Assembly (NCBI GenBank): GCA_002269645.1
Contig: NIVC01000864.1
Coordinates: forward strand, 124,001-188,000
Direction: 5' to 3'
DNA: 64,000 nt
DNA from: Macrostomum lignano
Lineage: Eukaryota
The notes beneath the pieces are model-generated. The model searched no databases, was not told where the DNA came from, and saw only the letters and a list, made by a program, of their open reading frames with translations. Both the position numbers and the translations under genes were made by a program. This document shows positions 22,187 to 57,569 of this stretch, piece by piece; the stretch's first letter is position 1, and each line of letters starts with the position of its first letter.

Positions 22187-22571
22187 TGTAGTACACCTTA
22201 ATTTCGTAATTTAAATTGGTGCCAACTCGAGGCGTGTGTTAAGTAAAGCAAAGTAATCGCATAGCAATGTAATAATACTCGTATATTTTCGTTTCGTTCA
22301 ATACTTATATTCGTAACTTTATATCAGCTGAATTTCATCGCCTTAGCTCGATGGTGAGTCCAATAAATGCTGAATCATAGCTCGAACTGTTACTGGCTAT
22401 GCTTTAGAGTGTGCCTAGTAAGCAGGCAGCTGTGCAAGCTTGTGATTGGGCGGTCAAGGCTCAAAGTCAAATTTAGTGTCCTGCCTCCGTTCTTGTTACA
22501 TTTGGCGACCACGCCAGGACGAATTTCTTCATAGCATAAAAGACCGAAGGTTGCACCTGTCATCGATCATC

Positions 22572-25500: not shown

Positions 25501-27759
25501 CTTCCTCGGCATGACCTCCTACTACCGAAGATTTGTGCGCGAATACGCCAATATCGCCGAGCCTCTGCGCCGCCTTACACTGCCTACGCCCTTCGAGTGG
25601 ACGCCAGAAGCCGAGGCGGCCTTCAACCAGCTGAAGCAAGCGCTGCTGTCAGCTCCGATCCTGGCGTTCCCGGACATGAGCGAGTCGGGCTCCGAATTCA
25701 TCCTCGACACCGACGCAAGTGACTGCGCAATCGGCGCGGTGCTGTCGCAAGTGCAGGCGAGCGAAGAGCGGGTTATCGCCTACGCCAGCCGCGCCCTGTC
25801 AAGAGCTGAGCGCAACTACTGCGTGACGCGGCGCGAGCTCCTGGCTGTTGTCGAGTTTGTTAAGAAGTTCCGGAGCTACCTGCTGCCACGCGCCTTCACC
25901 GTTCGAGTGGATCACCAGGCGCTCACCTATCTGCTGGCATTCAAAGAGCCCGAAGGCCAGCTGGCCAGATGGCTGCAGCTGCTCGATGAGTTCAACTTCA
26001 AGGTCGTCTTTCGCCGAGGCCGCCAACACGGCAACGCAGACGCCCTCTCTCGGCGAGAGCAAAAGTGCACCAGCCAGTGTCGAGTCTGTCGGCCAGGGAC
26101 GACAGCGGTGGCGCCAGCCGAGACTTCAACAGCCGCCTGCCAGACGGAGCCGACGGTCGAGGCGCCAGTGCCAATCGCGGAGCCTGCTGGCCGGGTCGAC
26201 ACAGTCAGAGTCAACTCCGTGCAAACCAACGCAGCGACATCAGCGCCGGCTACCTCTGCGGCTGCCCAGACCAACGCCGAGCCGGAACGTCAGGGCACCT
26301 CAAGGCGGAAGCAGCAGCTTCAACCGCGGCCAAGCGAGAGCGAGGACTCCAGCGAAGACGAAATCAGCGACGAGGCCATTCAGGAAGGCGACGCGCTGTC
26401 AGATGCGTCTCAGTCACTGCGTGAACTGCAGCTCCGTGATCCAGACATCGGCCCGGTGTTTCGCCTGCTGTCCAACGGCAAGACAAGGTTCAGCGCCAGC
26501 AGACGTGACCGACTGTCGCCTGAGAGTCTAATTCTGGCACAGAAGATCGGCGACCTGTGTTTCGTCGACGGCGCCCTGAACAAGCTGGTGAAGCCAAGCC
26601 TGTGCCTGTGATTCCGCGCTGCAGACAGGAGGAGTTCATCGAGGAGGTCCATGAGCTTGGGCATCTGGGCGAGGACAAGACCTTGGCAGCCCTCAAGCAG
26701 CGTTGCTACTGGCCGAAAATGGCGGAGAGCGTTCGCCTAGCGGTCAGGTCCTGCCAAGTGTGCCAGCGCGCTAAGACACCGAGTCAGCGCCGAGCTCCAC
26801 TGCAGACTATGGCCAGTGGATTTCCTATGCAGCGCGTGGGCATCAACGTGGTCAAAGTTGGACTGTCACGGCGGGGAAACGATCGGCTGCTCACCATTGT
26901 CGACTACTTCACCAAGTGGGTCGAGCTGGTGCCACTCCCCGACGAGAAAGCGGCCACCATCGCCAAGGCACTGTTCGACAACTGGGTGACGCGTTTCGGA
27001 GCCCCGCACATTCTGCACTCCGACCGTGGCAAGGCCGTGGACGGAAAGGTCATCAGGAGCCTGTGCCGGCTGCTGGAGATTCAGAAGACGCGGACATCCG
27101 GCTACCATCCGCAGTGCGACGGCCTAGTAGAAAGGTTCCACCGCACTCTGCACCAGATGCTCCGCTGCCACCTGCAGTCAGTTCAGCCGGAGGACTGGGA
27201 AGAAGTGCTGCCGCATTGTCTCCTGGCCTACCGCAGCAGCGTCAATGCTACAACCGGGTTTACTCCTCACTGCCTGCTGACTGGCCGGGAAATGACGCTT
27301 CCAGTTGACGTCGTCTACCGGCCACCGGAGCCGCCAATGACAGTCGGCCAGTTCGCCGCCAACAACCGCGACCAGCTGCTTCGCGCCTACGACTCCGTGC
27401 GGCGATCGATGGCACAACGACGCCAGCGGCGGTACTACGACCGGAAGGCCAAGCGGTGCAGATTCCGGGTCGGCGACCTCGTATGGGTTTTCGTTCCGCC
27501 GTCGGCGCTTTCAAGGACGACTGGACTGGCTCCGAAACACCAGGCGCCCTGGACCGGCCCGTTCCGGGTGCTGCAGCGAACGTCGCCGGTGAACTACCTG
27601 GTTCGTCCTATCGATTACAAGGACGGCGACACCGGTCGGGTGGTCCACGCAAACAAGCTGAAACGTGCGCACCAGCCCCGCGCTCCCGACCCGGCGCGGA
27701 GTGAGGCGACCAGCGACTGCAGCAGCGAAGTTCTTGACGATGGCTGGGTCCTAGTGTGA
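22572..27759 (+). pseudogene. Element B gag-pol, broken by two apparent -1 frameshifts (about 25480 and about 26590)
   Basis: CYGCHQPGHIRRRC, IDTGAEIS and FIDDVIV are in frame 1; SFLGMTSYYRRF, TDASDCAIG and RNase H are in frame 2; HELGHLG...CQVC and the integrase core are in frame 3. The first ATG after the PBS is at 22572; the track start at 22446 is a TTG inside the LTR. Confidence 0.9.
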
Positions 27760-32659: not shown

Positions 32660-34190
32660 TGTAGCTGTTTATATTGGTCAGCTGTAGCTGTTTATATTGG
32701 TCAGCTGTAGCTGTATATATTGGTCAGCTGTAGCTGTTTATATTGGTCAGCTGTAGCTGTATATATTGGTCAGCTGTAGTTGTATATATTGGTCAGCTGT
32801 AGTTGTTTATATTGGTCAGCTGTAGCTGTATATATTGGTCAGCTGTAGTTGTTTATATTGGTCAGCTGTAGCTGTTTATATTGGTCAGCTGTAGATGTTT
32901 ATATTGGTCAGCTGTAGTTGTTTATATTGGTCAGCTGTAGATGCTTATATTGGTCAGCTGTAGATGTTTATATTGGTCAGCTGTAGATGTTTATATTGGT
33001 CAGCTGTAGATGCTTATATTGGTCAGCTGTAGATGTTTATATTGGTCAGCTGTAGATGTTATATTGGTCAGCTGTAGATGTTATATTGGTCAGCTGTAGA
33101 TGTTTATATTGGTCAGCTGTAGATGTTTATATTGGTCAGCTGTAGATGTTATATTGGTCAGCTGTAGATGTTATATTGGTCAGCTGTAGATGTTATATTG
33201 GTCAGCTGTAGATGTTTATATTGGTCAGCTGTAGATGTTTATATTGGTCAGCTGTAGATGTTATATTGGTCAGCTGTAGATGTTATATTGGTCAGCTGTA
33301 GATGTTATATTGGTCAGCTGTAGATGCTTATATTGGTCAGCTGTGGATGTTTATATTGGTCAGCTGTAGATGTTATATTGGTCAGCTGTAGATGTTATAT
33401 TGGTCAGCTGTAGATGCTTATATTGGTCAGCTGTAGATGTTATATTGGTCAGCTGTAGATGTTTATATTAGTCAGCTGTAGCTGTTTATTTTAGTCAGCT
33501 GTAGCTGTTTATATTAGTCAGCTGTAGATGTTTATATTAGTCAGCTGTAGCTGTTTATATTAGTCAGCTGTAGACATCAACTGGTCAGCTGTAGACAGCA
33601 ACTGGTCAGCTGTAGACAGCAACTGGTCAGCTGTAGACAGCAACTGGTCAGCTGTAGACAGCAACTGGTCAGCTGTAGACAGCAACTGGTCAGCTGTAGA
33701 CAGCAACTGGTCAGCTGTAGACAGCAACTGGTCAGCTGTAGACAGCAACTGGTCAGCTGTAGACAGCAACTGGTCAGCTGTAGACAGCAACTGGTCAGCT
33801 GTAGACAGCAACTGGTCAGCTGTAGACAGCAACTGGTCAGCTGTAGACAGCAACTGGTCAGCTGTAGACAGCAACTGGTCAGCTGTAGACAGCAACTGGT
33901 CAGCTGTAGACAGCAACTGGTCAGCTGTAGACAGCAACTGGTCAGCTGTAGACAGCAACTGGTCAGCTGTAGACAGCAACTGGTCAGCTGTAGACAGCAA
34001 CTGGTCAGCTGTAGACAGCAACTGGTCAGCTGTAGACAGCAACTGGTCAGCTGTAGACAGCAACTGGTCAGCTGTAGACAGCAACTGGTCAGCTGTAGAC
34101 AGCAACTGGTCAGCTGTAGACAGCAACTGGTCAGCTGTAGACAGCAACTGGTCAGCTGTAGACAGCAACTGGTCAGCTGTAGACAGCAAC
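32660..34190. repeat. Compound minisatellite in CWF19L1 intron 2: a 22-23-bp unit (GGTCAGCTGTAGATGTTTATATT) switching to a 21-bp unit (GGTCAGCTGTAGACAGCAACT)
   Basis: Shared core GGTCAGCTGTAG; the switch is near 33570. Confidence 0.95.
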
Positions 34191-34250
34191 TGCAGACCCT
34201 CTGCCCACCAATCGCCACCAATCTGGATTCCCAATCCCCTCCCCCCTCAG

Positions 34251-34327
34251 AAGCCGGGCCGCGCAGTTTCTTCTTCGCCGAAGCCTCCGGCAAGCCGGGC
34301 CACGCCGGTCAGAAACGGAGATCCGAA

Positions 34328-34358
<31 letters not shown>

Positions 34359-35044
34359 GCGAGGCCAAGCGGCGGCAGCAGCAGGCGGCCTGCTGGTTCT
34401 GCCTGGGGAACCCGGAAGTGCAGCGGCAGCTGGTTGTATCCGTGGCCAAGTCAACTTACCTGGCTTTGGCCCGCGGTCCCCTGGTGCCGCAGCACGTGAT
34501 TGCCCTGCCAATCGGACATCACAAATGCCTGTCCGACTGTCCAGCCGAGGTTCTGTCCGAGTTCTCCCGCTACAAGCGCTGCCTGGCCCAGCTGTACGCC
34601 GCCTCCGAGCTGGCCCCGGTGTACATCGAGCGGAATTTCAAATGCTTCCACGCCCAGCTGCACTGCATCCCCGTGCCCGTGGCCTCCCTGCCCGGCCTCA
34701 AAGCCGCTTTCCTGGACGTCGCCGACAAGCACGAGCCAAGGCTGAGTCTTCGCGAGCTGCACCCTGGCGCCGATCTGGCCGATCTCGTGCCGCCCGGGGC
34801 GCCGTATTTCTGCGCCGACCTGCCCACTGGCGAGCGGCTGTTCTGCCCGATTCGTCGGGACCAGTTCGACACGTTTCCGTTGAGCTTCGGCCGCGACGTC
34901 CTGGCCTCGCATCACGTCTACGACTGTCCGACTCGCGTAGACTGGCGCGACTGTCTGCAGTCCGAGGCCGAGGAGACCGCCGCGGCCGAGGAGTTCAAAA
35001 AATCGTTCGCCCCGTTCGATTTTTCATTGAACTGCGACGAGTGA
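34251..35044 (+). CDS. CWF19L1: CWF19L1 exon 3/3 (CwfJ C-terminal domains)
   Basis: Acceptor cccctcag|; CWFCLGNPEVQRQLVVSV...YLALARGPL...HVIALPIGH...ERN...HAQLHCIPVP...FGRDVLA...DWRDC...FAPFDF; TGA ends at 35044. Confidence 0.93.
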
Positions 35045-35904: not shown

Positions 35905-38120
35905 GTAAATAAGAGACTGAGGATAGCAGGTGTAGGTAGATAAGAGACTGGGGATAGCAGGGGTAGGTAAATAAGAGACTGAGGATAGCAGGGGTAGGTA
36001 GATAAGAGACTGAGGATAGCAGGTGTAGGTAGATAAGAGACTGGGGATAGCAGGGGTAGGTAGATAAGAGACTGGGGATAGCAGGTTTAGATAAATAAGA
36101 GACTGGGGATAGCAGGTGTAGGTAGATAAGAGACTGGGGATAGCAGGTTTAGATAAATAAGAGACTGGGGATAGCAGGGGTAGGTAGATAAGAGACAGGC
36201 GATAGCAGGTGTAGGTAGATAAGAGACAGGAGATAGCAGGGGTAGGTAGATTAGAGACTGGAGATAGCAGGTGTAGGTAGATAAGAGACTGGGGATAGCA
36301 GGTGTAGGTAGATAAGAGACTGGAGATAGCAGGTGTAGGTAGATAAGAGACAGGAGATAGCAGGGGTAGGTAGATTAGAGACTGGAGATAGCAGGGGTAG
36401 GTAGATAAGAGACTGGGGATAGCAGGTGTAGGTAGATAAGAGACTGGGGATAGCAGGGGTAGGTAGCTAAGAGACTGAGGATAGCAGGGGTAGGTAGATA
36501 AGAGACTGGGGATAGCAGGGGTAGGTAGATAAGAGACTGGGGATAGCAGGTGTAGGTAGATAAGAGACTGGGGATAGCAGGGGTAGGTAGATAAGAGACT
36601 GGGGATAGCAGGGGTAGGTAGATAAGAGACTGGGGATAGCAGGGGTAGGTAGCTAAGAGACTGAGGATAGCAGGGGTAGGTAGATAAGAGACTGGGGATA
36701 GCAGGTGTAGGTAGATAAGAGACTGGGGATAGCAGGGGTAGGTAGCTAAGAGACTGGGGATAGCAGGGGTAGGTAAATAAGAGACTGAGGATAGCAGGGG
36801 TAGGTAGATAAGAGACTGAGGATAGCAGGTGTAGGTAGATAAGAGACTGGGGATAGCAGGGGTAGGTAGATAAGAGACTGGGGATAGCAGGTTTAGATAA
36901 ATAAGAGACTGGGGATAGCAGGTGTAGGTAGATAAGAGACTGGGGATAGCAGGGGTAGGTAAATAAGAGACTGAGGATAGCAGGGGTAGGTAGATAAGAG
37001 ACTGAGGATAGCAGGTGTAGGTAGATAAGAGACTGGGGATAGCAGGGGTAGGTAGATAAGAGACTGGGGATAGCAGGTTTAGATAAATAAGAGACTGGGG
37101 ATAGCAGGTGTAGGTAGATAAGAGACTGGGGATAGCAGGGGTAGGTAAATAAGAGACTGAGGATAGCAGGGGTAGGTAGATAAGAGACTGAGGATAGCAG
37201 GTGTAGGTAGATAAGAGACTGGGGATAGCAGGGGTAGGTAGATAAGAGACTGGGGATAGCAGGTTTAGATAAATAAGAGACTGGGGATAGCAGGTGTAGG
37301 TAGATAAGAGACTGGGGATAGCAGGTTTAGATAAATAAGAGACTGGGGATAGCAGGGGTAGGTAGATAAGAGACAGGCGATAGCAGGTGTAGGTAGATAA
37401 GAGACAGGAGATAGCAGGGGTAGGTAGATTAGAGACTGGAGATAGCAGGTGTAGGTAGATAAGAGACTGGGGATAGCAGGTGTAGGTAGATAAGAGACTG
37501 GAGATAGCAGGTGTAGGTAGATAAGAGACAGGAGATAGCAGGGGTAGGTAGATTAGAGACTGGAGATAGCAGGGGTAGGTAGATAAGAGACTGGGGATAG
37601 CAGGTGTAGGTAGATAAGAGACTGGGGATAGCAGGGGTAGGTAGATAAGAGACTGAGGATAGCAGGGGTAGGTAGATAAGAGACTGGGGATAGCAGGGGT
37701 AGGTAGATAAGAGACTGGGGATAGCAGGTGTAGGTAGATAAGAGACTGGGGATAGCAGGGGTAGGTAGATAAGAGACTGGGGATAGCAGGGGTAGGTAGA
37801 TAAGAGACTGGGGATAGCAGGGGTAGGTAGCTAAGAGACTGAGGATAGCAGGGGTAGGTAGATAAGAGACTGGGGATAGCAGGGGTAGGTAGATAAGAGA
37901 CTGGGGATAGCAGGGGTAGGTAGATAAGAGACAGGAGATAGCAGGGGTAGGTAGATAAGAGACTGAGGATAGCAGGGGTAGGTAGATAAGAGACTGGGGA
38001 TAGCAGGGGTAGGTAGATAAGAGACTGGGGATAGCAGGTGTAGGTAGATAAGAGACTGGGGATAGCAGGGGTAGGTAGATAAGAGACTGGGGATAGCAGG
38101 TGTAGGTAGCTAAGAGGGAG
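35905..38120. repeat. 31-bp minisatellite (GTAGGTAGATAAGAGACTGGGGATAGCAGGG), about 70 copies, with internal higher-order duplication
   Basis: Visible copies; rare variants recur at 1178-bp spacing. Confidence 0.95.
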
Positions 38121-38544: not shown

Positions 38545-39107
38545 AATAAAACCCTGTCCCACACCCAGACTAACCCTGTCCCATACCCCAGTACCCCAGT
38601 CAAACCCTGTCCCATACCCCAGACAAACCCTGTCCCATACCCCAGTCAAACATGTCCCATACCCCAGTCAAACCCTGTCCCATATCCCAGTCAAACCCTG
38701 TCCCATACCCCAGACAAACCCTGTCTTATACCCCAGTCAAACCTTGTCCCATACCCCAGACAAACGCTGTCGCACACCCTAGAAAAAACCCTATCTCCCA
38801 CACAAGACAAATCTTGTCCTTCACCCCAGACAACCCTGTCCCACACTCCAGACAAACCCTTTCCCATACCCCAGTCAAACCCTGTCCCAAACCCCAGTCA
38901 AACCCTGTCCCATACCCCAGTCAAACCCTGTCCCATACCCCAGACAAACCCTGTCCCATACCCCAGTCAAACATGTCCCATACCCCAGTAAAACCCTGTC
39001 CCATATCCCATTCAAACCCTGTCCCATACCCCAGACAACCCTGTCCCACACCCCAGACAAACCCTGTCCCACACCCAGACAAACCCTGTCCGATACCACA
39101 TACAAAC
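38545..39107. repeat. Minisatellite (AAACCCTGTCCCATACCCCAGTC), an inverted relative of the 35190-35580 array
   Basis: Unit AAACCCTGTCCCACACCCAGACT at about 38548 is the reverse complement of the 35190 unit. Confidence 0.88.
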
Positions 39108-39519
39108 CCCTGGCTGATTTTTCGATAAGTATTGAGAACACAAGTGCAAGAAGTACGGGTGTTCGAATTTTGTTCGGAAGGGAAGCCATCAAGTGCACTG
39201 AAGGGACTTTTTGCGATCCAAGTGTCTGCTTAATCCCTGCAGTGTCTTCTCAATAAATTTGTTTTCACCGAAAATTTTTAGACGACGCTAATTTTATAAT
39301 TACAAGGCGTTTTGAGGCCTTAGCAGGTGCTTTTGAAGCATTTCTGCTGCTCATTCATCTTTAGTCTTTGATGTGGGTCTCGCATCTTTGTTATCTGAAA
39401 ATCACTGTTTACGCCCATGATATTGACACGAATCTTGTCGCTAATGGTATAATTAGGGAATTAGAAGCATTAATGCATAAACTGGTTAATTATAACTAAT
39501 TGACATGTAGACAGATAGA

Positions 39520-40440
39520 CTAAGCCCCAGACAGACACTATGGCAGACACTAGGGCAGACTCCAAGGCAGACACTAAGACAGACACTAGGGCAGACACTA
39601 GGGCAGACACTAAGGCAGACACTAAGGCAGACACTAAGGCAGACACTAGGGCAGACACTAGGGCAGACACTAAGACAGACACTAGGGCAGACATTATGGC
39701 AGACTCCAAGGCAGACACTAAGACAGACACTAGGGCAGACACTAGGGCAGACACTAAGGCAGACACTAAGGCGGACACTAAGGCAGACACTAGGGCAGAC
39801 ACTAAGGCAGACACTAGGGCAGACACTAGGGCAGACACTAAGACAGACACTAGGGCAGACACTAAGACAGACAACATGAGACACTAGGGCAGACACTAGG
39901 GCAGACACTATGGCAGACACTAGGGCAGACACTAAGACAGACACTAGGGCAGACACTAAGACAGACAACATGACAGACACTAGGGCAGACACTAAGACAG
40001 ACACTAGGGCAGACACTAGGGCAGACACTAAGACAGACACTAGGGCAGACACTAAGACAGACACTATGGCAGACACTAGGGCAGACACTAGGGCAGACAC
40101 TAAGACAGACACTAGGGCAGACACTAGGGCAGACACTAAGACAGACACTAGGGCAGACACTAAGACAGACACTATGGCAGACACTAGGGCAGACACTAGG
40201 GCAGACACTAAGACAGACACTATGGCAGACACTAGGGCAGACACTAGGGCAGACACTAGGGCAGACACTATGGCAGACACTATGGCAGACACTAGGGCAG
40301 ACACTATGGCAGACACTAGGGCAGACACTAGGGCAGACACTAGGGCAGACACTAGGGCAGACACTAGGGCAGACACTAGGGCAGACACTATGGCAGACAC
40401 TATGGCAGACACTAGGGCAGACAACATGGCAGACACTAAG
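39520..40440. repeat. 12-bp minisatellite (GCAGACACTAGG)
   Basis: Visible; explains the DTRA/VSAL ORFs. Confidence 0.95.
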
Positions 40441-40615
40441 GCAGACAGAAATAAATTGATCAAATGATTGATACAGTGCCAGCTAAACAGGCTGACTGAT
40501 AGGTCAGCAGCTCGTTGCTCCCGGGCCCCCAGTTCAGCCGAAGGCCGCCCCGCCCGGCCCAATCGCTGCCCCGAGTCGCCGCTGGCCGGCCCGCCCACGC
40601 ACCGAGCGCCGCCGC

Positions 40616-40621
40616 TATAAA
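40616..40621 (+). promoter_or_regulatory. TATA box of NPF precursor gene 1
   Basis: TATAAA preceded by GC-box-like sequence, 124 nt upstream of ATG 40740. Confidence 0.6.
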
Positions 40622-40739
40622 TCCGGGCAGCCCGGCATCTCGAAGGCTCGCCGCGCAGAAATCCCCCCGCCTAGCAGCTAACGGCAGGTCAAACAACACC
40701 CACAAACTGATCAACCGCAACCTCGGCCAAGCAGCAGAA

Positions 40740-41153
40740 ATGAACGCGGCTCAACTGTCAACTCTTCTGCTTTTGCTCCTGTCCGCCGCCGCCCTCGGCC
40801 AGTCCAAGTCTCTGGCCAGAGCGCCCGAGGAGGTGAACAAAGACTTCACCTCGGCCGACGACGTGGCCGAGTACTTGCACTACCTCAACAAGTACTTTCA
40901 CTCGGTCAGCCGGCCCCGATTCGGCAAGCGCGGCAACGCCTACGACTTCCGCTCGCCAGCCGAGGCTGCCAAGTATGTGACCAGCCTGAACCAGTACCTG
41001 CACTCGGTCAGCCGGCCCCGCTTCGGCAAGCGGCAGGCCTCCTTCGACACCCCGGCCGCGGCCGCCGAGTACATCAACAACCTCAACCAGTACCTGCACT
41101 CCATGAGCCGGCCCCGCTTCGGCAAGCGGATGTACCGCATTGACAGGCGATGA
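40740..41153 (+). CDS. NPF: NPY/NPF-family neuropeptide precursor 1: signal peptide plus three ...SRPRF-GKR peptides, intronless, 137 aa
   Basis: MNAAQLSTLLLLLLSAAALG signal; three cassettes ending RPRF-G-KR, each with Tyr at -10 and -17 from the C-terminus; AATAAA at 41295 and 41308. Confidence 0.92.
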   Translation: MNAAQLSTLLLLLLSAAALGQSKSLARAPEEVNKDFTSADDVAEYLHYLNKYFHSVSRPRFGKRGNAYDFRSPAEAAKYVTSLNQYLHSVSRPRFGKRQASFDTPAAAAEYINNLNQYLHSMSRPRFGKRMYRIDRR

Positions 41154-41399
41154 TTCGATTGGATTGAGCAGCGTTTCCTAGAAACTGGACCGACTGAGTC
41201 GATTGCTGGCCCGTCTCAATCTTCACTCGAACCTCTCTCTGTGTCTCTCACAGCTCCTACTTGGCGAACTGTTATTGCTAACACGATGCGTCAAAATAAA
41301 ATCCGACAATAAACGCGTGCAATTGTGAAAACTAAATTGTTTTGCCACTGCTTTCTGAACTACTGCTTAAGATTGTTGCTTTCGGACATGGATTATAGC

Positions 41400-42580
41400 A
41401 GAACTGGTAACTATGAGTCTATGACCAGAGCGGAACTCGTAGCTATGAGTCTATGACCAGAGCGGAATTAGTAGTTATGAGTCCATGACCAGAGCGGAAT
41501 TAGTAGCTATGGGTCTATGACCAGAGCGGAATTAGTAGTTATGAGTCCATGACCAGAGCGGAATTAGTAGCTATGAGTCTATGACCAGAGCGAAATTAGT
41601 AGCTATGAGTCTATGACCAGAGCGGAACTCGTAGTTATGAGTCTATGACCAGAGCGGAATTAGTAGTTATGAGTCCATGACCAGAGCGGAACTAGTAGCT
41701 ATGAGTCTATGACCAGAGCGGAATTAGTAGTTATGAGTCTATGACCAGAGCGGAACTAGTAGGTATGAGTCTATGACCGGAGCGGAACTAGTAGCTATGA
41801 GTCTATGACCAGAGCGGAACTGGTAGCTATGAGTATATGACCAGAGCAGAACTGGTAGCTATGAGTCTATGACCAGAGCGGAATTAGTAGTTATGAGTCT
41901 ATGACCAGAGCGGAACTAGTAGCTATGAGTCTATGACCGGAGCGGAACTAGTAGCTATGAGTCTATGACCAGAGCGGAACTGGTAGCTATGAGTATATGA
42001 CCAGAGCAGAACTGGTAGCTATGAGTCTATGACCAGAGCGGAACTCGTAGCTATGAGTCTTTGACCAGAGCGGAACTAGTAGCTATGAGTCTATGACCAG
42101 AGCGGAACTAGTAGCTATGAGTCTATGACCAGAGCGGAACTAGTAGCTATGAGTCCATGACCAGAGCGGAACTGGTAGCTATGAGTCTATGACCAGAGCG
42201 GAATTAGTAGCTATGAGCCTATGACCAGGGCTCAACTAGTAGCTATGAATCTCATGACCAGAACAGAACTAGTAAGCTACGAGTCCATGACCAGAGCGGA
42301 ACTAGTAGCTATGAGTCCATGACCAGAGCGGAACTCGTAGCTATGAGTCCATGACCAGAGCGGAACTAGTAGCTATGAGTCTATGACCAGAGCGGAACTA
42401 GTAGCTATGAGTCTATGACCAGAGCGGAACTAGTAGCTATGAGCCTATGACCAGGGCTTAACTAGTAGTTATGAATCTCATGACCAGAACAGAACTAGTA
42501 AGCTATGAGCCTATGACCAGGGCGGAACTAGTAGCTATAAATCTCATGACCATAGCGGAACTAGTTTGTATGACCATAAT
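41400..42580. repeat. 32-bp minisatellite (CTAGTAGCTATGAGTCTATGACCAGAGCGGAA) downstream of NPF gene 1
   Basis: About 36 visible copies; the same family occurs at 44345-44935. Confidence 0.95.
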
Positions 42581-43064: not shown

Positions 43065-43530
43065 CTTTCTCGCGAACTGTCTAAACTGTCTATGACCATT
43101 GTGTAGCTAAACTGTCTATGATCATTGTGTAGCTAAGCTGTCTATGACCGTTGTGTAGCTAAGCTGTCTATGACCGTTGTGTAGCTAAGCTGTCTATGAC
43201 CGTTGTGTAGCTAAACTGTCTATGACCATTGTGTAGCTAGGCTGTCTATGACCATTGTGTAGCTAAACTGTCTATGACCATTGTGTAGCTAGGCTGTCTA
43301 TGACCATTGTGTAGCTTAACTGTCTATGACCATTGCATGTGTAGCTAAGCTGTCTATGACCATTGCATGTGTAGCTAAGCTGTCTATGACCATTGTGTAG
43401 CTAAGCTGTCTATGACCATTGTGTAGCTAAACTGTCTATGACCATTGTGTAGCTAAGCTGTCTATGACCATTGTGTAGCTAAACTGTCTATGACCATTGT
43501 GTAGCTAAGCTGTCTATGATAATTGTGCAG
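43065..43530. repeat. 26-bp minisatellite (CTGTCTATGACCATTGTGTAGCTAAA)
   Basis: About 17 copies; shares the GTCTATGACC core with the 32-bp family. Confidence 0.92.
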
Positions 43531-43774
43531 CTAACATTGCTTTCACGACCACTGCACATGAATATGCTTTCCGGCATATACTACTATCAGTAGGAAATAT
43601 GGACACGATCTTAAAATTTATCAATGCGCAATCTGCAGCTTGAAAAATATGAAGTGACATCCTTTGGGAATGCCTAAAGAATGGGAACTCTCGTTTCTCT
43701 GCACCTTTCCGCCTCTGTTCCTCCGTATACTTCGTAATCTTAATCTTAATCTTAATCTTAAAGTGAATCAAACC

Positions 43775-44087
43775 ATGGCTCGACTCCCAACTCTAATTCT
43801 GGTGCTGGTGCTCATCTTTGGGACTCTGGATCCGCCCAGGTGCCTGGCAGAAGTTCCAGAAGCTCCAACAAAGTTCAACTCGGCCGACGAAGTTGACGAG
43901 TACTTGCAGGACCTCAACAAGTACTTCCTACTGGCTCAGCCTTTCCCGGTTCGGCAAGCGCAGCAAGACCAAAGACTTTCGCTCACCTGAAGAGGCCACC
44001 AAGTACGTGATCAGCCTGCTGCAGTACGTGTAGTGGGCCAGTCGGCCTCGCTACGGCAAGCGGTAGTACAGAATTAATAGACGATGA
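43775..44087 (+). pseudogene. NPF: NPF precursor paralog 2: two peptide cassettes, disrupted by a +1 frameshift and stop codons
   Basis: Signal MARLPTLILVLVLIFG...; EVPEAPTKFNSADEVDEYLQDLNKYF, then a shift to ...SLSRFGKR SKTKDFRSPEEATKYVISLLQYV*WASRPRYGKR*YRINRR*. TAG at 44031 and 44064; the 3' UTR is homologous to gene 1. Confidence 0.85.
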
Positions 44088-44344: not shown

Positions 44345-44935
44345 TGTGAGTCTATGACTAGAGCGGAACTAGAACTAGTACATGTTGCTGTGAGTATATG
44401 ACCAGAGCAGAACTAGTAGCTATGACTCTATGACCAGAACGGAACTAGTAGCCATGAGTCTATGACCAGAGCGGAACTAGTAGGTATGAGTCTATGACCA
44501 GAGCAGAATTAGTAGCTGTGAGTCTATGACCAGAGCGGAACTAGTAGCTATGAGTCTATGACCAGAGCGGAACTAGTATCTATGAGTCTATGACCAGAGC
44601 GGAACTAGTAGCTATGAATCTATGACCAGAGCGGAACTAGTATCTATGAGTCTATGACCAGAGCGGAACTAGTAGCTATGAATCTATGACCAGAGCGGAA
44701 CTAGTATCTATGAGTCTATGACCAGAGCGGAACTAGTAGCTATGAGTCTATGACCAGAGCGGAACTAGTATCTATGAGTCTATGACCAGAGCGGAATTAG
44801 TAGCTATGAGCCTATCACCAGAGAGGAACTCGTAGCTATGAGTCTATGACCAGAGCGGAACTAGTAGCTATGACTCTATGACCAGAACGGAACTAGTAGT
44901 TATGATCCTTTGACCGGAGTCTAACCTGTTTGCAT
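44345..44935. repeat. Second array of the 32-bp CTAGTAGCTATGAGTCTATGACCAGAGCGGAA minisatellite
   Basis: Same unit as 41400-42580, in the same position relative to the NPF paralog. Confidence 0.93.
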
Positions 44936-45279: not shown

Positions 45280-45780
45280 CTCTCCCCTAGGGAGATCCCC
45301 TCTCCTCTCTCCCTACACTCTCCCTGTCTCCCTACACTATCCTTGCCTCCCTTCACTCTCCGTGTCTCCCTACAGTCTCCCTTCACTCTCCCTGTCTCCC
45401 TTCACTCTCCCTGTCTCCCTTCACTCTCCCTGTCTCCCTTCACTCTCCCTGTCTCCCTTCACTCTCCCTGTCTCCCTTCACTCTCCCTGTCTCCCCTCAC
45501 TCTCCCTGTCTTCCTTCACTCTCCCTGTCTCCCTTCACTCTCCCTGTCTCCCTTCACTCTCCCTGTCTCCCTTCACTCTCCCTGTCTCCCTTCACTCTCC
45601 CTGTCTCCCTTCACTCTCCCTGTCTCCCTTCACTCTCCCTGTCTCCCTTCACTCTCCCTGTCTCCCTTCACTCTCCCTGTCTCCCTTCACTCTCCCTGTC
45701 TCCCTTCACTCTCCCTGTCTCCCTTCACTCTCCCTGTCTCCCTTCACTCTCCCTGTCTCCCTACAGTCTCCCTCTCTCTT
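45280..45780. repeat. 19-bp pyrimidine-rich minisatellite (CTCCCTGTCTCCCTTCACT)
   Basis: About 20 near-perfect copies. Confidence 0.94.
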
Positions 45781-47220: not shown

Positions 47221-47646
47221 ATGGCTGCTGCCAGAGGAATTAGCCTGCCGTGTCTACTCCTCATTCTGCTGTCGACTGCCGCTCTGGTCCAGTCGAAGTA
47301 TCTGCTCAAAGCGCCGCAGGAGGCCGCTGACAGCTTCGAATCGGCTGATGACGTAGCTGAATACCTGAATTACCTTAGCCGGTACTTCCGCTCCGTGAGC
47401 CGGCCTCGCTTCGGCAAGCGCAGCAGGTCGTCGTTTGACACCGCGGCTGCTACGGCCGAGTACATCAACGGCCTCAACAAGTACTTGCACTCGATGAGCC
47501 GGCCTCGCTTTGGCAAGCGCAGCAGGTCGTCGTTTGACACCGCGGCTGCGACGGCCGAGTACATCAACGGCCTCAACAAGTACTTGCACTCGATGAGCCG
47601 GCCCCACTTCGGCAAGCGCAGGTTACACCTGTACTATCTGTACTAA
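47221..47646 (+). CDS. NPF: NPY/NPF-family neuropeptide precursor 3: signal peptide plus three peptides (SRPRF, SRPRF, SRPHF, each followed by GKR), intronless, 141 aa
   Basis: MAAARGISLPCLLLILLSTAALVQS signal; cassettes end at 47412, 47511 and 47610; Tyr -10/-17 conserved; AATAAA at 47714-47719. Confidence 0.92.
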   Translation: MAAARGISLPCLLLILLSTAALVQSKYLLKAPQEAADSFESADDVAEYLNYLSRYFRSVSRPRFGKRSRSSFDTAAATAEYINGLNKYLHSMSRPRFGKRSRSSFDTAAATAEYINGLNKYLHSMSRPHFGKRRLHLYYLY

Positions 47647-48364: not shown

Positions 48365-49388
48365 TCACTGACAGAAGCTGCTGAATCCGCCGCCTACAGA
48401 AGGCGGCAGCGGCTGCGGATGCGGCGGCAGCGGCATCAGCCACGCTGACGAAGCTGAACCCGACGACAGCGTCGAGGAAGCTCCAACCTGCGGCGGCGTC
48501 ATCGGCATCGCCAGCTCCTCCGCGTGCCACAGCCGCAGCTGGTCGCGGGCGGCTCGGCTGGACAGGCGGGCACCGGCCGGGTCCGCCCAGAGCGCCAGCA
48601 TCAGGCCGAACACGCGGGCCGGACAGGCGGCCGGACAATCCAGCAGGCGGCGCGCCCGGATCAGGCCGATGACGGCGCTGTTGCCGCAGCCGCTGTAGGG
48701 CTGGGCGCCAAGCGACCAGACCTCCCACAGCAGCACCCCCAGGCTGTAGGCGTCGCTGTGCTCCGAGTAGCTGCCGTACAGAATTGACTCTGGCGGCATC
48801 CAGCGGATTGGAAGCCGGCCGCCGACGCCTCCTCCGCGCGACACCTGCAGCCGGTAATAGTCAGCTGAATAGGCTTCCCGGCACTGGCCGAGATCTCCCA
48901 GCCGGCAGTGCAGCAGCTGGCCGGGGCAACAAGCGTCCACCTGGACATTTCTGGCCGCCACGTCGCGGTGTACAAATCCCCGGCTGGCCAGGTAGTCCAG
49001 CGCGCAGGCCACCTGAGCAGCCGCGTGCAGCATCTGCTGCTGGCTGAGCGGCCCCGCCGGCGGCTCGCAGTCGCCGGACGCAGCCGAGGCCGAGGCGACC
49101 AGCAGCTCGTGAAGATCGCGACTGGCGGCGAGCTCGACGACGGTGCACCAGGGGGTCTGGCGCAGCGAGGCGCCCAGCAGCCGCGCCAGGTTGGGGTGGC
49201 CGCCGGCGCCCCCGGTGGCCTCGGCCTGGGCGCGGAACTCGACGAGGAAGCGCTGACGTTCGGCTGCGTCAGCGCCGGCTCGGAGGCAGCGAATGACCAC
49301 CGGAGTGAGCGAGCTGGCCGAGTGCAGGCCGATGAGCTCGCCGCGGTACGCCCGGCCGAAGGCGGCGTCGCCCAGCTGCTCACCGAAG
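48365..49388 (-). CDS. ROR: ROR-family receptor tyrosine (pseudo)kinase, exon 7/7: kinase domain and Ser/Pro-rich tail
   Basis: Acceptor cccacag|, phase 2; RFGEQLGDAAFG, HRDVAARN, DLG, YSADYYR, LPIRWMPPESILYG, SDAYSLGVLLWE; TGA at 48365-48367. Confidence 0.92.
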
Positions 49389-49494
49389 CTGTGGGAAATC
49401 ACGGATCAGCTGGTGAAATTCCTCATGGTTGAGTTTCACCAAGAAGGCGCCATTGCTGTTAATTTTCCAGGAACCTGTGAAAATTTTCTAGGAA

Positions 49495-52745: not shown

Positions 52746-55700
52746 TGTAGGCTTGCGCCTTAGCAGTGTCATTCTATATCGGCGTACATTCAACTCTCTA
52801 ACCATGCACGCGATAACCCCCCATTGACTAATATTTAAATACACGCATTGGCATTTACTCGTATTTGGAACTTTGCTATCTGTATCGATCCAAGCAAACT
52901 CACACGGCTTGTCAGACTTCCTACAGTGGCGTCGCAAACACACAAACCTACGCGAGGGCAATGGCCACTAACTACGTTTCACTGCCCCCACCAGAGCCGT
53001 TCTCAATTATCAGCGACCCTCACAATGCTGGCAAACGCTGGAGCGAGTGGTCAGCACGCTTTCAAGATTTCATTGACGCTTCGGGCATCACCAATGAAAA
53101 CCAACGGTGCAAGCTGCTAAGCTACACAGCAGGGAAAGAAATTGCAGACATAATCCGAGCTCTGCCCCCGCCAGCTGAAGGGAATCAGACCACACTCGAC
53201 AACACGCTAAATGCTTTAAAGCAGCAGTTTGACGAGAGAAAGAACATCGTCTTCGCTCGATACCAATTTAGGAACTGCATCCAGCAACAAGGAGAGAAAA
53301 TCGAAGCTTGGTATTCACGAATGCGTGCTTCAGCCGAGGCTTGTGAGTTCGAAAATCTGAAGGACTCCCTTATCAGAGACCAGCTTGTAGCGACCTGTAC
53401 ATCAGACAAGTTACGACGGCGGCTACTCCAAGAGACCAACATTTCCTTGGACGAAGCCCTGCGAAAAGCGAGAGCGTTTGAAGCAGCGGAGGAGCAGGCA
53501 TCGGAGATGCAGAAAACAGATTCGCAGGTGGCAAGCGTTACAAGATCCAACAAGCCCCGGATGAACGGACGCGAAGCATCCAGCACCGCCAGCAGCAGCA
53601 GCAGCAGCAGCAGCAGGCAATCTCAACAGCAGACATGCTACCGCTGCGGACAAAAAGGTCACTCTACATGCGACTTGGCGAGAGGAAAAATCTGCCTCAA
53701 CTGCGGGAAAACCAATCACCTAGCCAAAGCATGCCGCAAAGCACGCTCGAGTAACAACACGATTCGATCGCAAGTCAGCGCTAACCTAGTGAGCACCTCA
53801 CCGGAGCCAAACTTCGATGCTAGCATCGGCGAAGACGTTTTTGGCTTGTGCAAAGACAGCAGCTACCCAGCAGACGTCTCGTTAACTGTCGAAATCGGAG
53901 ACTGTAAGCTACCGGTGATGGTGGACAGCGGAGCCAGCTGCAGTATCATGAGCATCAAAACATTCCGGCAGCTGGGTGATCAGCGAATTCGAACCACCAA
54001 GGTAAAAGTTCATGCATATGGAACGCCCGAACCTCTCAAAATCATCGGTACTGCGAGCTTAGGCATCAAAATAGGTACCGCTAGCGCAACTGTGCCTTTC
54101 CACGTTCTCGACGGCGACGGTCTAACGATACTCGGACGCCAAGCTGCCTTTGAGCTAGGAATCCTGCATATCCAGCGGCCAATTCTCAGCCAGACAGAAG
54201 ATGTCAACTCCAACGTCAAGGCAGCCGAGGGGTATAAAAGCCAGAATATTCAGGACATCTTGCATCAGCACAAAAAAGTATTTGACGGAATTGGATGCAT
54301 CAAAGGCGTGCAGGTCGAAGTTCAGCTGTCGGACAACGCGGCCCCGGTGTGTCATCCGCCAGCCCGAGTTGCAGCGCATCTCCGAGAATCTGTTATCAAG
54401 GAGCTGAAAGACTTAGAAAGGCAAGATATCATCGAGCCAGTAAAAGGACCCTGCGCGTGGGTGGCCCGCATGGTAGTAGTTCCAAAGGACGATGGCGGAG
54501 TCCGAATCTGCCAGGACCTGCGCAACCTAAACGCCTATGTCATCCCTGAAAAACAACAAATACCGACATTGGACGAGGTCACCGAGGAAATGTCCGGAGC
54601 CAAGCTGTTCAGCGAGCTAGATATTCGTAAAGCCTTTTACCAGATCCCAGTGCACGAGAACAGCCGGCACCTTTTCACATTTAGCACGCCGCTCGGACTA
54701 ATGCGCCTCAAAAGACTGAGCATGGGCTTTACGAATGCATCCGAAATCCTACAAAGAGTCATGCTCGGCGTGCTTAGCGGAATCGATGGTGTTCGTTGGG
54801 TCCACGACGACGTCATCGTATACGCTTCGGACCTGCAAGAGCACTGCAAAAGACTCGAAGCCTGTCTGCAGCGTCTCGAAGAATTCGGAATTACGCTAAA
54901 TAAGTGCAAATTCGCCGTCCCCGCTGTCGAGTTCTTGGGAATGCGCCTATCTGCAAAGGGAGTGCAGCCTGCTAATGAGAAGATCGAAGCTATGAAGCAC
55001 TTCAGACAGCCGACCAACGTATCCGAAGTTCGCTCGTTCCTAGGCACAGCAAACTTTCTGGCAAAATTCATACCTAACTTCGCTGATGTCTCCGCACCGC
55101 TGCGCAGATTAACAAAGAAAGGGGAGACATTCGAGTGGACTGCCAGCCACTCAAAAGCCTTCGAAGAGATCAAATTGATCATCAGTAAGGCAGAAACTCT
55201 TGCCTTTTTCGACCGCAAACACCAAACAGAGCTTATAGTTGACGCATCACCAATCGGACTTGGTGCGATCCTGACACAAAAGCAGCCGGACGGAATCTGC
55301 AGACCAGTGGCTTACGCCAGCAGAGCGCTGTCACAAGTTGAGCAGCGGTACGCCCAGATTGAGTGGGAGGCGCTGGCTATCAAATTTGGCTGCTTGAAGT
55401 TCGAAAACTACCTGGCTGGTGATCCAAGTTTTACAGTGGTGACCGACCACCGACCGCTCCTGCCACTCTTCAGACCAGGATCCCGCCCGCCACCACGGAT
55501 TGAACGCATGGTTCTTCGGATTCAACACCTCCGCTTCAACTTGGTGTACAGACCAGGGCCGTCCAACCCAGCTGATCTACTAAGCCGCCAACCGCTTCCA
55601 GAGATCAGGAAAAACTGGGGAGAGGTCTTCGACACCGCATACGTCAACGCTGTATCAACAGGAGCCGTGCCAAAAGGTTTCAGTGCGGAACAAATCCGAG

Positions 55701-57569
55701 ACGCAGCAAAGACAGACGCAGGAATTCAAGCCGCGCTGAGTGCCATCAAGACAGGAAACTGGAACACACACGACTCGGTACAACGCGCACTAAAAGCCAT
55801 CAGCAGCGAACTGACAGAAGACAATGGAATGCTACTTCGAGGAGACCTCATTGTCGTCCCAGAGTCACTACGGAGACCAATTTTGCAACTGGCCCACACC
55901 GGACATCTTGGTGCCGATCGAACACTCAAGCGTCTGCAGACCAAAGTCTGGTGGCCAGGGATGCGCAGTGACTGTGGTGCTTTCGTGAAATGCTGCATTC
56001 CTTGTCAAGCGTCGGACACTCTTACCAATCAGACACCTCTGAGACCGACAAAGTTACCCGAGGGTCCCTGGCAGCAACTTGGAATGGACTTCTTCGGACC
56101 TGTTCAAGGCCAAATGCTTCTAGTTACCACGGACCTGTATTCTAAATACCCGGAGATCAACATTTTGAGCTCGACAACAGCAGAGAGTGTAAAACCGCAT
56201 CTGAGGAGACTTTTCAGCAGGCACGGCGTTCCAGTCGAAGTCGTGACAGACAACGGACCTCCTTTCAGTTCGGCCGATTTTCGTAGCTTTCTAGCCGACT
56301 TCGGAGTCCATCATCGCCTCATCTGCCCGCTGCATCCGGAGTCCAATGGGGCCACCGAGCGCCTCAATCGAAGCATCGGCAAAGCAGTGAAAACCGCAGT
56401 TTCTGAAGGTCGCAATTGGAGAGAAGCCATCGAAGACTGGCTGCTGGCTTTCCGCACGACACCACACAGGGCTACCGGACGCACTCCTGCAGAGCTTCTA
56501 ATGGGCAGAAAAATGAACGACGGAATCCCGACTAGCAAACCGTTCGTTCCAACAGCCGGTGAGGTCCACGACACTGTTAGAGCCTGGAATCGCAAGTATG
56601 CCGACAGCATGAAGCAGCAATTTGACACGCGCAACGCAGTGAAGGATCACAGCATCCAACCCGGCAACCAAGTGCTCCGCAAACAACAGACGCGAAACAA
56701 ACTGCAACTGCCTTTCGAGCCTCTGCCATGGACGGTAAAGGAAGTTCGAGGAGACACCTGCATCTTAGAGCGAGGGCGACAGTCCTGCATGCGCCATGTA
56801 ACGCATCTGCGACCTATCAGCCAACCTGCCTCTGCCGGCCAGCCGGCCTCAGCCGGCCAACCTGCCTTAGCCGGCCAGCCTGCCTCAGCCGGCCAACCTG
56901 CCTCAGCCGGCCAGCCTGCCTCAGCCGGCCAACCTGCCTCAGCCGGCCAACCTGTCTCTGCCGACCAACCTGCCTCAGCCGGCCAACCTGCCTCAGCCAG
57001 CCAACCTGCCTCTGCCGGCCAGCCTGCCTCAGCCGGCCAACCTGCCTCAGCCGGCCAGCCTGTCTCTGCCGGCCAACCTGCCTCGGCCGGCCAGCCTGTC
57101 TCTGCCGGCCAGCCTGTGTCTGCCGGCCAACCTGCCTCAGCCGGCCAGCCTGTGTCCGCCGGCCAGCCCGCCGGCCAGAGGGACTTCCTAGCCTTCAGGA
57201 GGCATCCACGTGAGGCTAAAGAGGGGCCGAAAATTTACAAATGACAAACGCTGTTTGAATCACTAACTGAACTGACAACAACAATATTATTTTTATTCCC
57301 TTCAACTGATTTACTGACAATAACAATATTTTTTCTTTCCGTCAGCTGTTTTTTTATTCCTCATCACTTTTTCCTTAGGGGGGAAGAATTGTAGGCTTGC
57401 GCCTTAGCAGTGTCATTCTATATCGGCGTACATTCAACTCTCTAACCATGCACGCGATAACCCCCCATTGACTAATATTTAAATACACGCATTGGCATTT
57501 ACTCGTATTTGGAGCTTTGCTATCTGTATCGATCCAAGCAAACTCACACGGCTTGTCAGACTTCCTACA
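52746..57569 (+). mobile_element. Full-length Ty3/Gypsy LTR retrotransposon C
   Basis: 180-bp LTRs at 52746-52925 and 57390-57569 (TGTAGG...CCTACA; one mismatch seen, 52870 A vs 57514 G); 5-bp TSD AACAG at 52741-52745 and 57570-57574; PBS-like TGGCGTCGC from 52927; PPT AGGGGGGAAGAAT at 57377-57389. Confidence 0.97.
52961..57244 (+). CDS. Element C intact gag-pol polyprotein (Gag with two Cys/His knuckles, protease, RT, RNase H, integrase, QPASAG-repeat tail)
   Basis: CYRCGQKGHSTC and CLNCGKTNHLAKAC, VDSGASCS, VHDDVIV, VDASPIGLGA, HTGH...CIPC, MDFFGP/TDNGP/NGATE. First ATG at 52961; the track start at 52865 is a TTG in the LTR. Confidence 0.95.
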   Translation: MATNYVSLPPPEPFSIISDPHNAGKRWSEWSARFQDFIDASGITNENQRCKLLSYTAGKEIADIIRALPPPAEGNQTTLDNTLNALKQQFDERKNIVFARYQFRNCIQQQGEKIEAWYSRMRASAEACEFENLKDSLIRDQLVATCTSDKLRRRLLQETNISLDEALRKARAFEAAEEQASEMQKTDSQVASVTRSNKPRMNGREASSTASSSSSSSSRQSQQQTCYRCGQKGHSTCDLARGKICLNCGKTNHLAKACRKARSSNNTIRSQVSANLVSTSPEPNFDASIGEDVFGLCKDSSYPADVSLTVEIGDCKLPVMVDSGASCSIMSIKTFRQLGDQRIRTTKVKVHAYGTPEPLKIIGTASLGIKIGTASATVPFHVLDGDGLTILGRQAAFELGILHIQRPILSQTEDVNSNVKAAEGYKSQNIQDILHQHKKVFDGIGCIKGVQVEVQLSDNAAPVCHPPARVAAHLRESVIKELKDLERQDIIEPVKGPCAWVARMVVVPKDDGGVRICQDLRNLNAYVIPEKQQIPTLDEVTEEMSGAKLFSELDIRKAFYQIPVHENSRHLFTFSTPLGLMRLKRLSMGFTNASEILQRVMLGVLSGIDGVRWVHDDVIVYASDLQEHCKRLEACLQRLEEFGITLNKCKFAVPAVEFLGMRLSAKGVQPANEKIEAMKHFRQPTNVSEVRSFLGTANFLAKFIPNFADVSAPLRRLTKKGETFEWTASHSKAFEEIKLIISKAETLAFFDRKHQTELIVDASPIGLGAILTQKQPDGICRPVAYASRALSQVEQRYAQIEWEALAIKFGCLKFENYLAGDPSFTVVTDHRPLLPLFRPGSRPPPRIERMVLRIQHLRFNLVYRPGPSNPADLLSRQPLPEIRKNWGEVFDTAYVNAVSTGAVPKGFSAEQIRDAAKTDAGIQAALSAIKTGNWNTHDSVQRALKAISSELTEDNGMLLRGDLIVVPESLRRPILQLAHTGHLGADRTLKRLQTKVWWPGMRSDCGAFVKCCIPCQASDTLTNQTPLRPTKLPEGPWQQLGMDFFGPVQGQMLLVTTDLYSKYPEINILSSTTAESVKPHLRRLFSRHGVPVEVVTDNGPPFSSADFRSFLADFGVHHRLICPLHPESNGATERLNRSIGKAVKTAVSEGRNWREAIEDWLLAFRTTPHRATGRTPAELLMGRKMNDGIPTSKPFVPTAGEVHDTVRAWNRKYADSMKQQFDTRNAVKDHSIQPGNQVLRKQQTRNKLQLPFEPLPWTVKEVRGDTCILERGRQSCMRHVTHLRPISQPASAGQPASAGQPALAGQPASAGQPASAGQPASAGQPASAGQPVSADQPASAGQPASASQPASAGQPASAGQPASAGQPVSAGQPASAGQPVSAGQPVSAGQPASAGQPVSAGQPAGQRDFLAFRRHPREAKEGPKIYK

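Follow-up and report, generated by a model that had tools for sequence, protein, structure and literature searches.

NPY/NPF peptides form one of the best-studied neuropeptide systems of bilaterians. Two features of their genes are used to judge orthology, for instance in the debate on the relationship of NPY to PrRP and sNPF: the precursor carries a single peptide, and a phase-2 intron interrupts an arginine codon. That canonical NPY/NPF precursors yield one peptide is a stated rule (PMC3749230), as the initial annotation of the DNA studied here had taken it to be; in such precursors, a C-terminal flanking peptide comes after it. The intron lies inside the Arg codon that precedes the terminal Phe or Tyr of canonical genes (Mair 2000, as cited in PMC7314547 and PMC2953531), and 10 of the 11 planarian npy genes retain it (PMC2953531).

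In flatworms, described members of the family include NPF of Moniezia and the products of npy-1 to npy-11 of Schmidtea, whose precursors have a signal peptide followed directly by a peptide with an amphipathic helix, tyrosines at positions 10 and 17 from the C-terminus and the ending RPRF-Gly-Lys-Arg. One of the planarian peptides, NPY-8, has a predicted active form of 28 residues without the proline-rich N-terminal arm (FDSADAF...GRPRF-amide), which activates the receptor NPYR-1 with an EC50 of 36.7 nM (PMC4862687); the activity of this arm-less peptide shows that an NPY-family receptor can be activated without the arm. Several RFamide peptides between dibasic sites are found in the sNPF precursors of protostomes, but sNPFs are only 8-12 residues long, end in xPxLRLRF-amide, have neither the helix nor the tyrosine spacing of NPY and constitute a separate family with its own receptors.

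Our window, a stretch of 64,000 nucleotides from contig NIVC01000864.1 of the flatworm Macrostomum lignano, contains at 40740..41153 of the forward strand one continuous ORF of 137 residues without interruption, which we call gene A (Table 1). Its layout is MNAAQLSTLLLLLLSAAALG / QSKSLARAPEEVNKDFTSADDVAEYLHYLNKYFHSVSRPRF-GKR / GNAYDFRSPAEAAKYVTSLNQYLHSVSRPRF-GKR / QASFDTPAAAAEYINNLNQYLHSMSRPRF-GKR / MYRIDRR, followed by the stop codon, so that a long C-terminal flanking peptide is absent and only a tail of seven residues remains. The initial annotation had described three NPY/NPF-like peptides of 41, 31 and 29 residues in one ORF, all with Tyr at −10 and −17 and each followed by GKR for amidation and cleavage; we recovered this ORF letter for letter, and lengths, tyrosine positions and processing motifs all agree with the sequence. 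A triple-cassette ORF of this kind is far beyond chance. Tandem Repeats Finder detected the repetition with a period of 96 nt and 2.7 copies (40866-41129), and an Rfam scan of the window gave no match. The signal peptide was assigned by eye, based on a hydrophobic Leu/Ala core and the residues A-L-G ahead of the cut (A-x-G, −3/−1). Upstream, a TATAAAT box is located about 40 nt 5' of the start of the public transcript-derived gene model (40662); downstream, the 3'UTR matches that of the neighboring gene B as far as the poly(A) signals, as seen in a DNA alignment.

Table 1. Gene A, its neighbors and the surrounding repeats, in window positions.
Feature	Position	Strand	Basis or remark
TATAAAT box of gene A	40616..40622	+	sequence; putative promoter
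Start codon and predicted signal peptide of gene A, aa 1-20, MNAAQLSTLLLLLLSAAALG	40740..40799	+	first in-frame ATG
Gene A cassette 1, QSKSLARAPEEVNKDFTSADDVAEYLHYLNKYFHSVSRPRF + GKR	40800..40931	+	41 aa; 34 aa with an additional cut after Arg27
Gene A cassette 2, GNAYDFRSPAEAAKYVTSLNQYLHSVSRPRF + GKR	40932..41033	+	31 aa
Gene A cassette 3, QASFDTPAAAAEYINNLNQYLHSMSRPRF + GKR	41034..41129	+	29 aa, possible pyroGlu
Gene A tail MYRIDRR (7 aa) and stop codon	41130..41153	+	sequence
Two AATAAA poly(A) signals	41295-41300 and 41308-41313	+	sequence
Gene B, decayed two-cassette paralogue	~43775-44087	+	tblastn, ORF list, DNA alignment to gene A
Gene C, intact paralogue with three cassettes, 141 aa	47221-47646	+	tblastn, ORF translation
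Satellite, 31-bp unit	36000-38116		scan began at 36000; GC skew extreme, 0.72
Satellite, 23-bp unit	38587-39109		
Satellite, 12-bp unit	39532-40447		directly 5' of the putative gene A promoter
Satellite, 32-bp unit	41397-42565		trails gene A
Satellite, 26-bp unit	43081-43534		
Satellite, 32-bp unit	44387-44919		trails gene B; unit as behind gene A
Satellite, 19-bp unit	45300-45778		
Ty3/gypsy-type LTR retrotransposon (RT, RNase H, integrase)	15019-21270	-	intact 2083-aa ORF
Ty3/gypsy-type LTR retrotransposon (RT, RNase H, integrase)	22446-27759	+	three ORFs
Ty3/gypsy-type LTR retrotransposon (RT, RNase H, integrase)	52865-57244	+	PNMA-like gag region
345-aa ORF, complete tyrosine/serine-threonine kinase domain	48365-49402	-	PF07714, E=6.9e-53
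CwfJ-family gene end	~34064-35044	+	PF04677/PF04676, public annotation; equals L002 1-981

Searches against Pfam place all three cassettes in the family. The whole gene A protein matched PF00159 (Hormone_3) with 96.1 bits (E=1.1e-27) in three stretches and, scanned singly, cassettes 1, 2 and 3 obtained 34.9, 39.3 and 34.2 bits, respectively, all above the curated cut-off of 28.7, with cassette 2 scoring highest. These matches span profile positions 8/9-36, which correspond to the helix and the C-terminus and leave the polyproline arm outside. Cassettes 2 and 3, whose match begins at position 9, lack the Pro-rich arm, as had been noted in the initial annotation, and cassette 1 is the only one with a remnant of it, a single proline (APEE). 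The three cassettes are 53-56% identical to each other, and the alignment shows both conserved tyrosines in each of them. RPRF-GKR, which combines a glycine as amidation donor with a dibasic cleavage site, occurs three times in frame.

The 18-residue helix segments of the cassettes are amphipathic, with hydrophobic moments of 0.44, 0.37 and 0.35 for cassettes 1 to 3 (p<=0.009 against shuffled sequences; p=0.001 for cassette 1), and in this they resemble the NPY helix. A single-sequence AF2 model of gene A shows a single helix in each cassette, with the SRPRFGKR stretches as non-helical linkers, at low confidence (mean pLDDT 44.5). At the peptide level, gene A thus has the features of the NPY/NPF family, whereas two defining features at the gene level are missing, namely the conserved intron and the single peptide with its flanking peptide. 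The N-terminal polyproline arm, together with a length of about 36-40 residues, is a further characteristic of the family that gene A does not show. It has the multi-copy layout of sNPF precursors, but its peptides, with 29-41 residues and SRPRF endings, lie outside the definition of sNPF.

A tblastn search of the window with the gene A protein found two further loci on the same strand, genes B and C (Table 1). Gene B has a +1 frameshift near 43929 and in-frame TAG codons at 44031-44033 and 44064-44066; its first cassette has lost the RP of RPRF, and it lacks both a third cassette and a matching promoter. These defects identify it as a pseudogene, so far unannotated, between genes A and C. It aligns with gene A from the start codon through the poly(A) signal, an extent of homology that would also fit a retrocopy. 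We rejected this origin because the same 32-bp satellite trails both genes, which points to a tandem segmental duplication at the level of DNA. Gene A, pseudogene B and gene C form a tandem cluster that arose by segmental duplication.

Gene C is intact. Its first cassette ends in ...YFRSVSRPRF-GKR, the second is SRSSFDTAAATAEYINGLNKYLHSMSRPRF-GKR, and the second and third, SRSSFDTAAATAEYINGLNKYLHSMSRP[R/H]F-GKR, differ in the window copy only in the R/H position. Both originated in a recent 99-nt tandem duplication (dS 0.15). In the window, cassette 3 ends in SRPHF due to a G to A change in codon 129 (47605-47607), and two further substitutions of the same copy are F15I, in the signal peptide, and S135L, in the tail; in the public copy of the gene (L001, 5001-5426), all three cassettes have SRPRF. 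The window copy may represent an allele whose third peptide is inactivated. The public gene C protein (P0002, 108 residues, BOX15_Mlig007142g2, named 'Neuropeptide Y' automatically in UniRef) skips one of the 99-nt repeats; in genomic DNA, three cassettes are present in both the window and the public copy. The gap of 99 nt can be placed in 128 equivalent ways, one of them GT-AG (47427-47525), and would reflect either a mapping artefact over the tandem repeat or a real splicing event that skips a cassette.

A fourth gene, gene D (BOX15_Mlig025228, locus L003), is unlinked to the cluster and encodes two cassettes within one exon. Its first cassette keeps a PQPPSP arm and ends in PRPQF; its second ends in SRPRF-Gly-stop. 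The number of cassettes is therefore three in genes A and C and two in B and D, and the multi-cassette layout is found in at least three M. lignano genes with transcript-derived models (A, C and D). We propose unequal exchange as the process that alters the number of cassettes, with the recent 99-nt duplication having brought gene C to three.

The ORFs of genes A, C and D are uninterrupted at every RPRF, so the hallmark intron is absent from all of them. Many genomic NPF calls of other animals break off at '...GRPR', as the Arg-codon intron predicts, and M. lignano genes have on average 4.9 introns (PMC5730564). The multi-cassette genes of M. lignano have lost the ancient Arg-codon intron, a loss that makes in-frame duplication of cassettes easy. 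Intron loss as a general prerequisite for cassette multiplication was also considered and rejected, since a three-cassette gene of krill (see below) spans 48 kb and hence has introns.

In public records, the gene A product is 100% identical to the GenBank entry 'hypothetical protein BOX15_Mlig009822g2, partial' (P0001) of M. lignano. With 163 residues and a stop codon (492 nt), this entry spans 40662 to 41153 and is N-terminally extended relative to the 137-residue ORF; the exact 137-residue protein was not found in public assemblies or transcript contigs, where P0001 is the only record. A second public contig encodes the same gene A protein, with 7 of 492 nt different and no amino-acid change. 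RNA-seq transcripts were the sole basis of the GenBank annotation of NIVC01 (PMC5730564), so the gene model, the 5' end of which lies just past the TATA box, is indirect evidence that gene A is transcribed. The sequences of these genes are thus already in public databases, though without annotation or with faulty models. Two annotation errors can be noted in these records: gene A is listed as a 'hypothetical protein', and gene C as a model of 108 residues that lacks one cassette.

We computed dN/dS between corresponding cassettes of the paralogues, for which synonymous sites are near saturation. The values were 0.11 for A1-C1 (dS 1.8), 0.13 for A3-C2 (26/32 identical) and 0.19 for A2-D2 (20/32 identical), and 0.09 for the young pair C2-C3 at dS 0.15. 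Cassette 2 of gene A is nearest to the second cassettes of gene D and pseudogene B. Between the window and public copies of gene A, five of the seven differences fall into the CDS, every one of them synonymous (P=8.5e-4 under neutrality). These values indicate that every cassette, not just cassette 1, is under purifying selection, and the conservation of cassettes 2 and 3 as peptides argues against the view that the first peptide alone matters. The SRPHF ending in the third cassette of the window copy of gene C is one sign of relaxed constraint and suggests that extra cassettes can drift.

Relatives were sought with HMMER, which scanned 1.84 billion representative proteins exhaustively, and with two profile searches of 5.8 billion. 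Among the matches listed (the best 120 of 528 relatives), multi-cassette NPFs came only from M. lignano and the krill Meganyctiphanes norvegica, apart from some plankton transcripts whose units are shorter; the longer matches that we inspected were all single-cassette. One of the searches with a cassette profile returned neither P0001 nor P0002, so retrieval was non-exhaustive. Within this scope, the HMMER scan and the profile searches listed no canonical single-cassette NPF of M. lignano. In the searchable literature, neither multi-copy NPF/NPY precursors nor NPFs of M. lignano are described; it covers the flatworm neuropeptide catalogues only in part, and an earlier description is possible.

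For the M. lignano cassettes, the closest named profile matches among those listed were such flatworm prohormones, especially planarian NPY-8 and NPY-1. Gene A has the same succession of signal peptide and peptide, the same amphipathic helix and tyrosine spacing and the same RPRF-Gly-Lys-Arg as the flatworm peptides described above. The predicted active form of NPY-8 is moreover arm-less, as cassettes 2 and 3 are, and has the motif F-[DE]-S-A-D in common with the M. lignano peptides. The difference lies in the architecture and the ending: planarian npy genes encode one peptide each, with GRPRF, whereas those of M. lignano encode two or three in one exon, with SRPRF.

The 'Neuropeptide F' genes of M. 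norvegica, at least three in number (P0005, P0045, P0046), are the only other three-cassette NPFs among the matches listed, with three cassettes each of about 31-34 residues and RPRF-GKR after a signal peptide, and they match Pfam Hormone_3 in three stretches (E=2.1e-30). Unlike those of M. lignano, however, the krill cassettes end in AIAGRPRF, belong to an arthropod lineage and are encoded by a gene that contains introns. By these differences, the two multi-cassette layouts are almost certainly of independent origin. A study of ice krill from 2013 had only a partial NPF2, which was interpreted as a single 17-residue peptide, and concluded that it was present in single copy; this partial Euphausia sequence probably belongs to the krill multi-cassette type. 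The plankton transcripts, which are arthropod-like and come from marine metatranscriptomes (Tara-type; P0007/P0015, P0008, P0009), have a single NPF-like unit and, behind it, two to four shorter ones with [SV]RPRF-GKR. Unlike the M. lignano cassettes, these units comprise about 20-25 residues and are mostly below the Pfam threshold.

The initial annotation had further proposed a distinct multi-peptide NPF subfamily and had contrasted its SRPRF endings with the common GRPRF. The subfamily is supported: cassettes 2 and 3 are as conserved as cassette 1 (dN/dS 0.11-0.19) and the layout recurs in genes C and D, so multi-peptide NPY/NPF-type precursors would form a small subfamily in M. lignano, although the krill genes show that the layout is not restricted to flatworms. 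The two neighboring family members and the loss of the hallmark intron had escaped the initial annotation. As to the endings, all three gene A cassettes do end in SRPRF, but this is not unusual. Decapod NPF-1 ends in ...SQVSRPRF-amide, and NPY-4 of Platynereis dumerilii, an NPF-like peptide, has SRPRF-amide as well (PMC8557429), which makes this ending ordinary rather than distinctive. NPY-4, which we compared by description, differs from gene A in that it belongs to a set of four NPF paralogues with 38-48 residues and that its known receptor lies outside the NPY/NPF receptor clade; the descriptions consulted mention no second copy in its precursor.

Under standard prohormone processing, the signal peptide of gene A would be taken off after Gly20, a prohormone convertase would cleave after each Lys-Arg, a carboxypeptidase would remove the basic residues and the exposed glycine would be converted to a C-terminal amide. 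One transcript would then yield three different ...SRPRF-amide peptides in a ratio of 1:1:1, one of them long (41 or 34 residues) and two short (31 and 29 residues) and without the Pro-rich arm. The predicted monoisotopic masses of the amidated products are 4813.40 (4796.37 as pyroGlu) or 4042.96 for peptide 1, 3542.78 for peptide 2 and 3310.59 (3293.57 as pyroGlu) for peptide 3. Since the amphipathic helix and the Arg-Pro-Arg-Phe-amide, which NPY-family GPCRs recognize, are kept, one or several receptors of the NPY/NPF type would be the most likely target of all products. Such processing is plausible in flatworms, given the NPY-8/NPYR-1 precedent and the M. lignano homologue of PC2, which is expressed in neurons and essential (PMC4490696).

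It could be argued that the hormone is the first, long peptide alone and that cassettes 2 and 3 are leftover internal duplications, with a role as spacer or flank, that are not released or lack bioactivity. This would preserve the rule of one peptide per canonical precursor (PMC3749230) and would suit the missing Pro-rich arm of the two shorter cassettes, with their Pfam match from profile position 9; also, the change from RPRF to RPHF in the third cassette of the window copy of gene C and the loss of cassette 3 in gene B indicate that extra cassettes are sometimes dispensable. We nevertheless consider it improbable, as cassettes 2 and 3 retain Gly-Lys-Arg, Tyr-10 and Tyr-17 and RPRF, show dN/dS values of 0.13-0.19 between paralogues near synonymous saturation and include, with cassette 2, the top Pfam score of the three. 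An arm-less planarian NPF of 28 residues, NPY-8, is moreover a proven receptor agonist (PMC4862687). The peptides might, on the other hand, be members of another RFamide family with multi-copy precursors, either as sNPF/PrRP-like peptides or as ligands of the Platynereis 'NPY-4 receptor' clade, their likeness to NPY being partly convergent. Against this stand the length of the cassettes (29-41 residues), their NPY-type helix and tyrosine spacing and their scores above the curated Pfam cut-off, since sNPFs have 8-12 residues and xLRLRF-amide ends. The PQPPSP arm in cassette 1 of gene D and the nearest named relatives among the matches listed, which are Schmidtea NPY-1, NPY-8 and NPY-2 and mollusc and annelid NPFs, speak for the NPY/NPF family as well. 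Membership in another family is thus unlikely, even though sNPF precursors typically have several copies (PMC7314547), the genes lack the hallmark intron of NPY/NPF and Platynereis NPY-4, also with SRPRF-amide, acts on a receptor that falls outside the clade of NPY/NPF receptors (PMC8557429).

Gene A lies in a repeat-rich region, flanked by long satellites and LTR retrotransposons, next to a pseudogene and not far from a gene whose public model shows how tandem cassettes can confuse annotation. In such surroundings, the three-cassette ORF could be an assembly or repeat artefact or a young pseudogene without function. We regard this as highly improbable, because an independent public contig with 7/492 nt different encodes the same 137-residue protein, because cassettes of 53-56% identity make a collapse or expansion error impossible, and because a TATA box, poly(A) signals and a transcript-derived model are present. 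The reading we prefer, to which we give a probability of roughly three in four, is that gene A is a functional multi-peptide precursor of the NPY/NPF family, in which the NPF-coding unit was tandemly multiplied within a single exon. As such, gene A, which is probably functional, represents a rare architectural variant of a well-known family and not a new kind of system.

A clearly NPY/NPF-like family that breaks both hallmarks shows that they are not absolute, and it provides a concrete case of cassette multiplication within a family of long peptides. It does so in M. lignano, a flatworm that is tractable by RNAi and transgenesis, and offers three candidate peptides with which receptors could be deorphanised, within a phylum in which germline maturation is under the control of NPY-8/NPYR-1. 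The effect is incremental, in that a known family is refined and no new system is revealed.

A broader evolutionary scenario is conceivable, though we consider it rather unlikely. In macrostomorphs, loss of the Arg-codon intron might have given rise to a fast-evolving, intronless family of multi-cassette NPFs, whose copy number is altered by unequal exchange and whose long and short products diverged toward different members of an expanded repertoire of NPY receptors. If true, these genes would represent a living intermediate between precursors with a single long peptide and precursors with multiple shorter ones, which is the contrast that separates NPF-type from sNPF-type genes. More speculatively, some of these peptides could have a role beyond the nervous system, such as in secretions with an effect on the mating partner.

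Several observations concern the surroundings of the cluster, which, with retrotransposons, a kinase ORF and long satellites, look like those expected in a repeat-rich animal genome. Dense satellite arrays occupy the space between the NPF genes (Table 1), and the 12-bp array upstream of gene A gives rise to long spurious ORFs on both strands. The kinase ORF, on the other strand, follows gene C at a distance of about 0.7 kb, and the end of the CwfJ-family gene lies about 5.7 kb upstream of gene A. Just ahead of this gene end, at ~33560-34190, there is a tandem repeat of about 21 bp, which is visible only as laddered BLAST matches. Finally, the segment 28001-30000, which adjoins the second retrotransposon, has a GC fraction of 0.31, compared to 0.42-0.60 elsewhere in the window.
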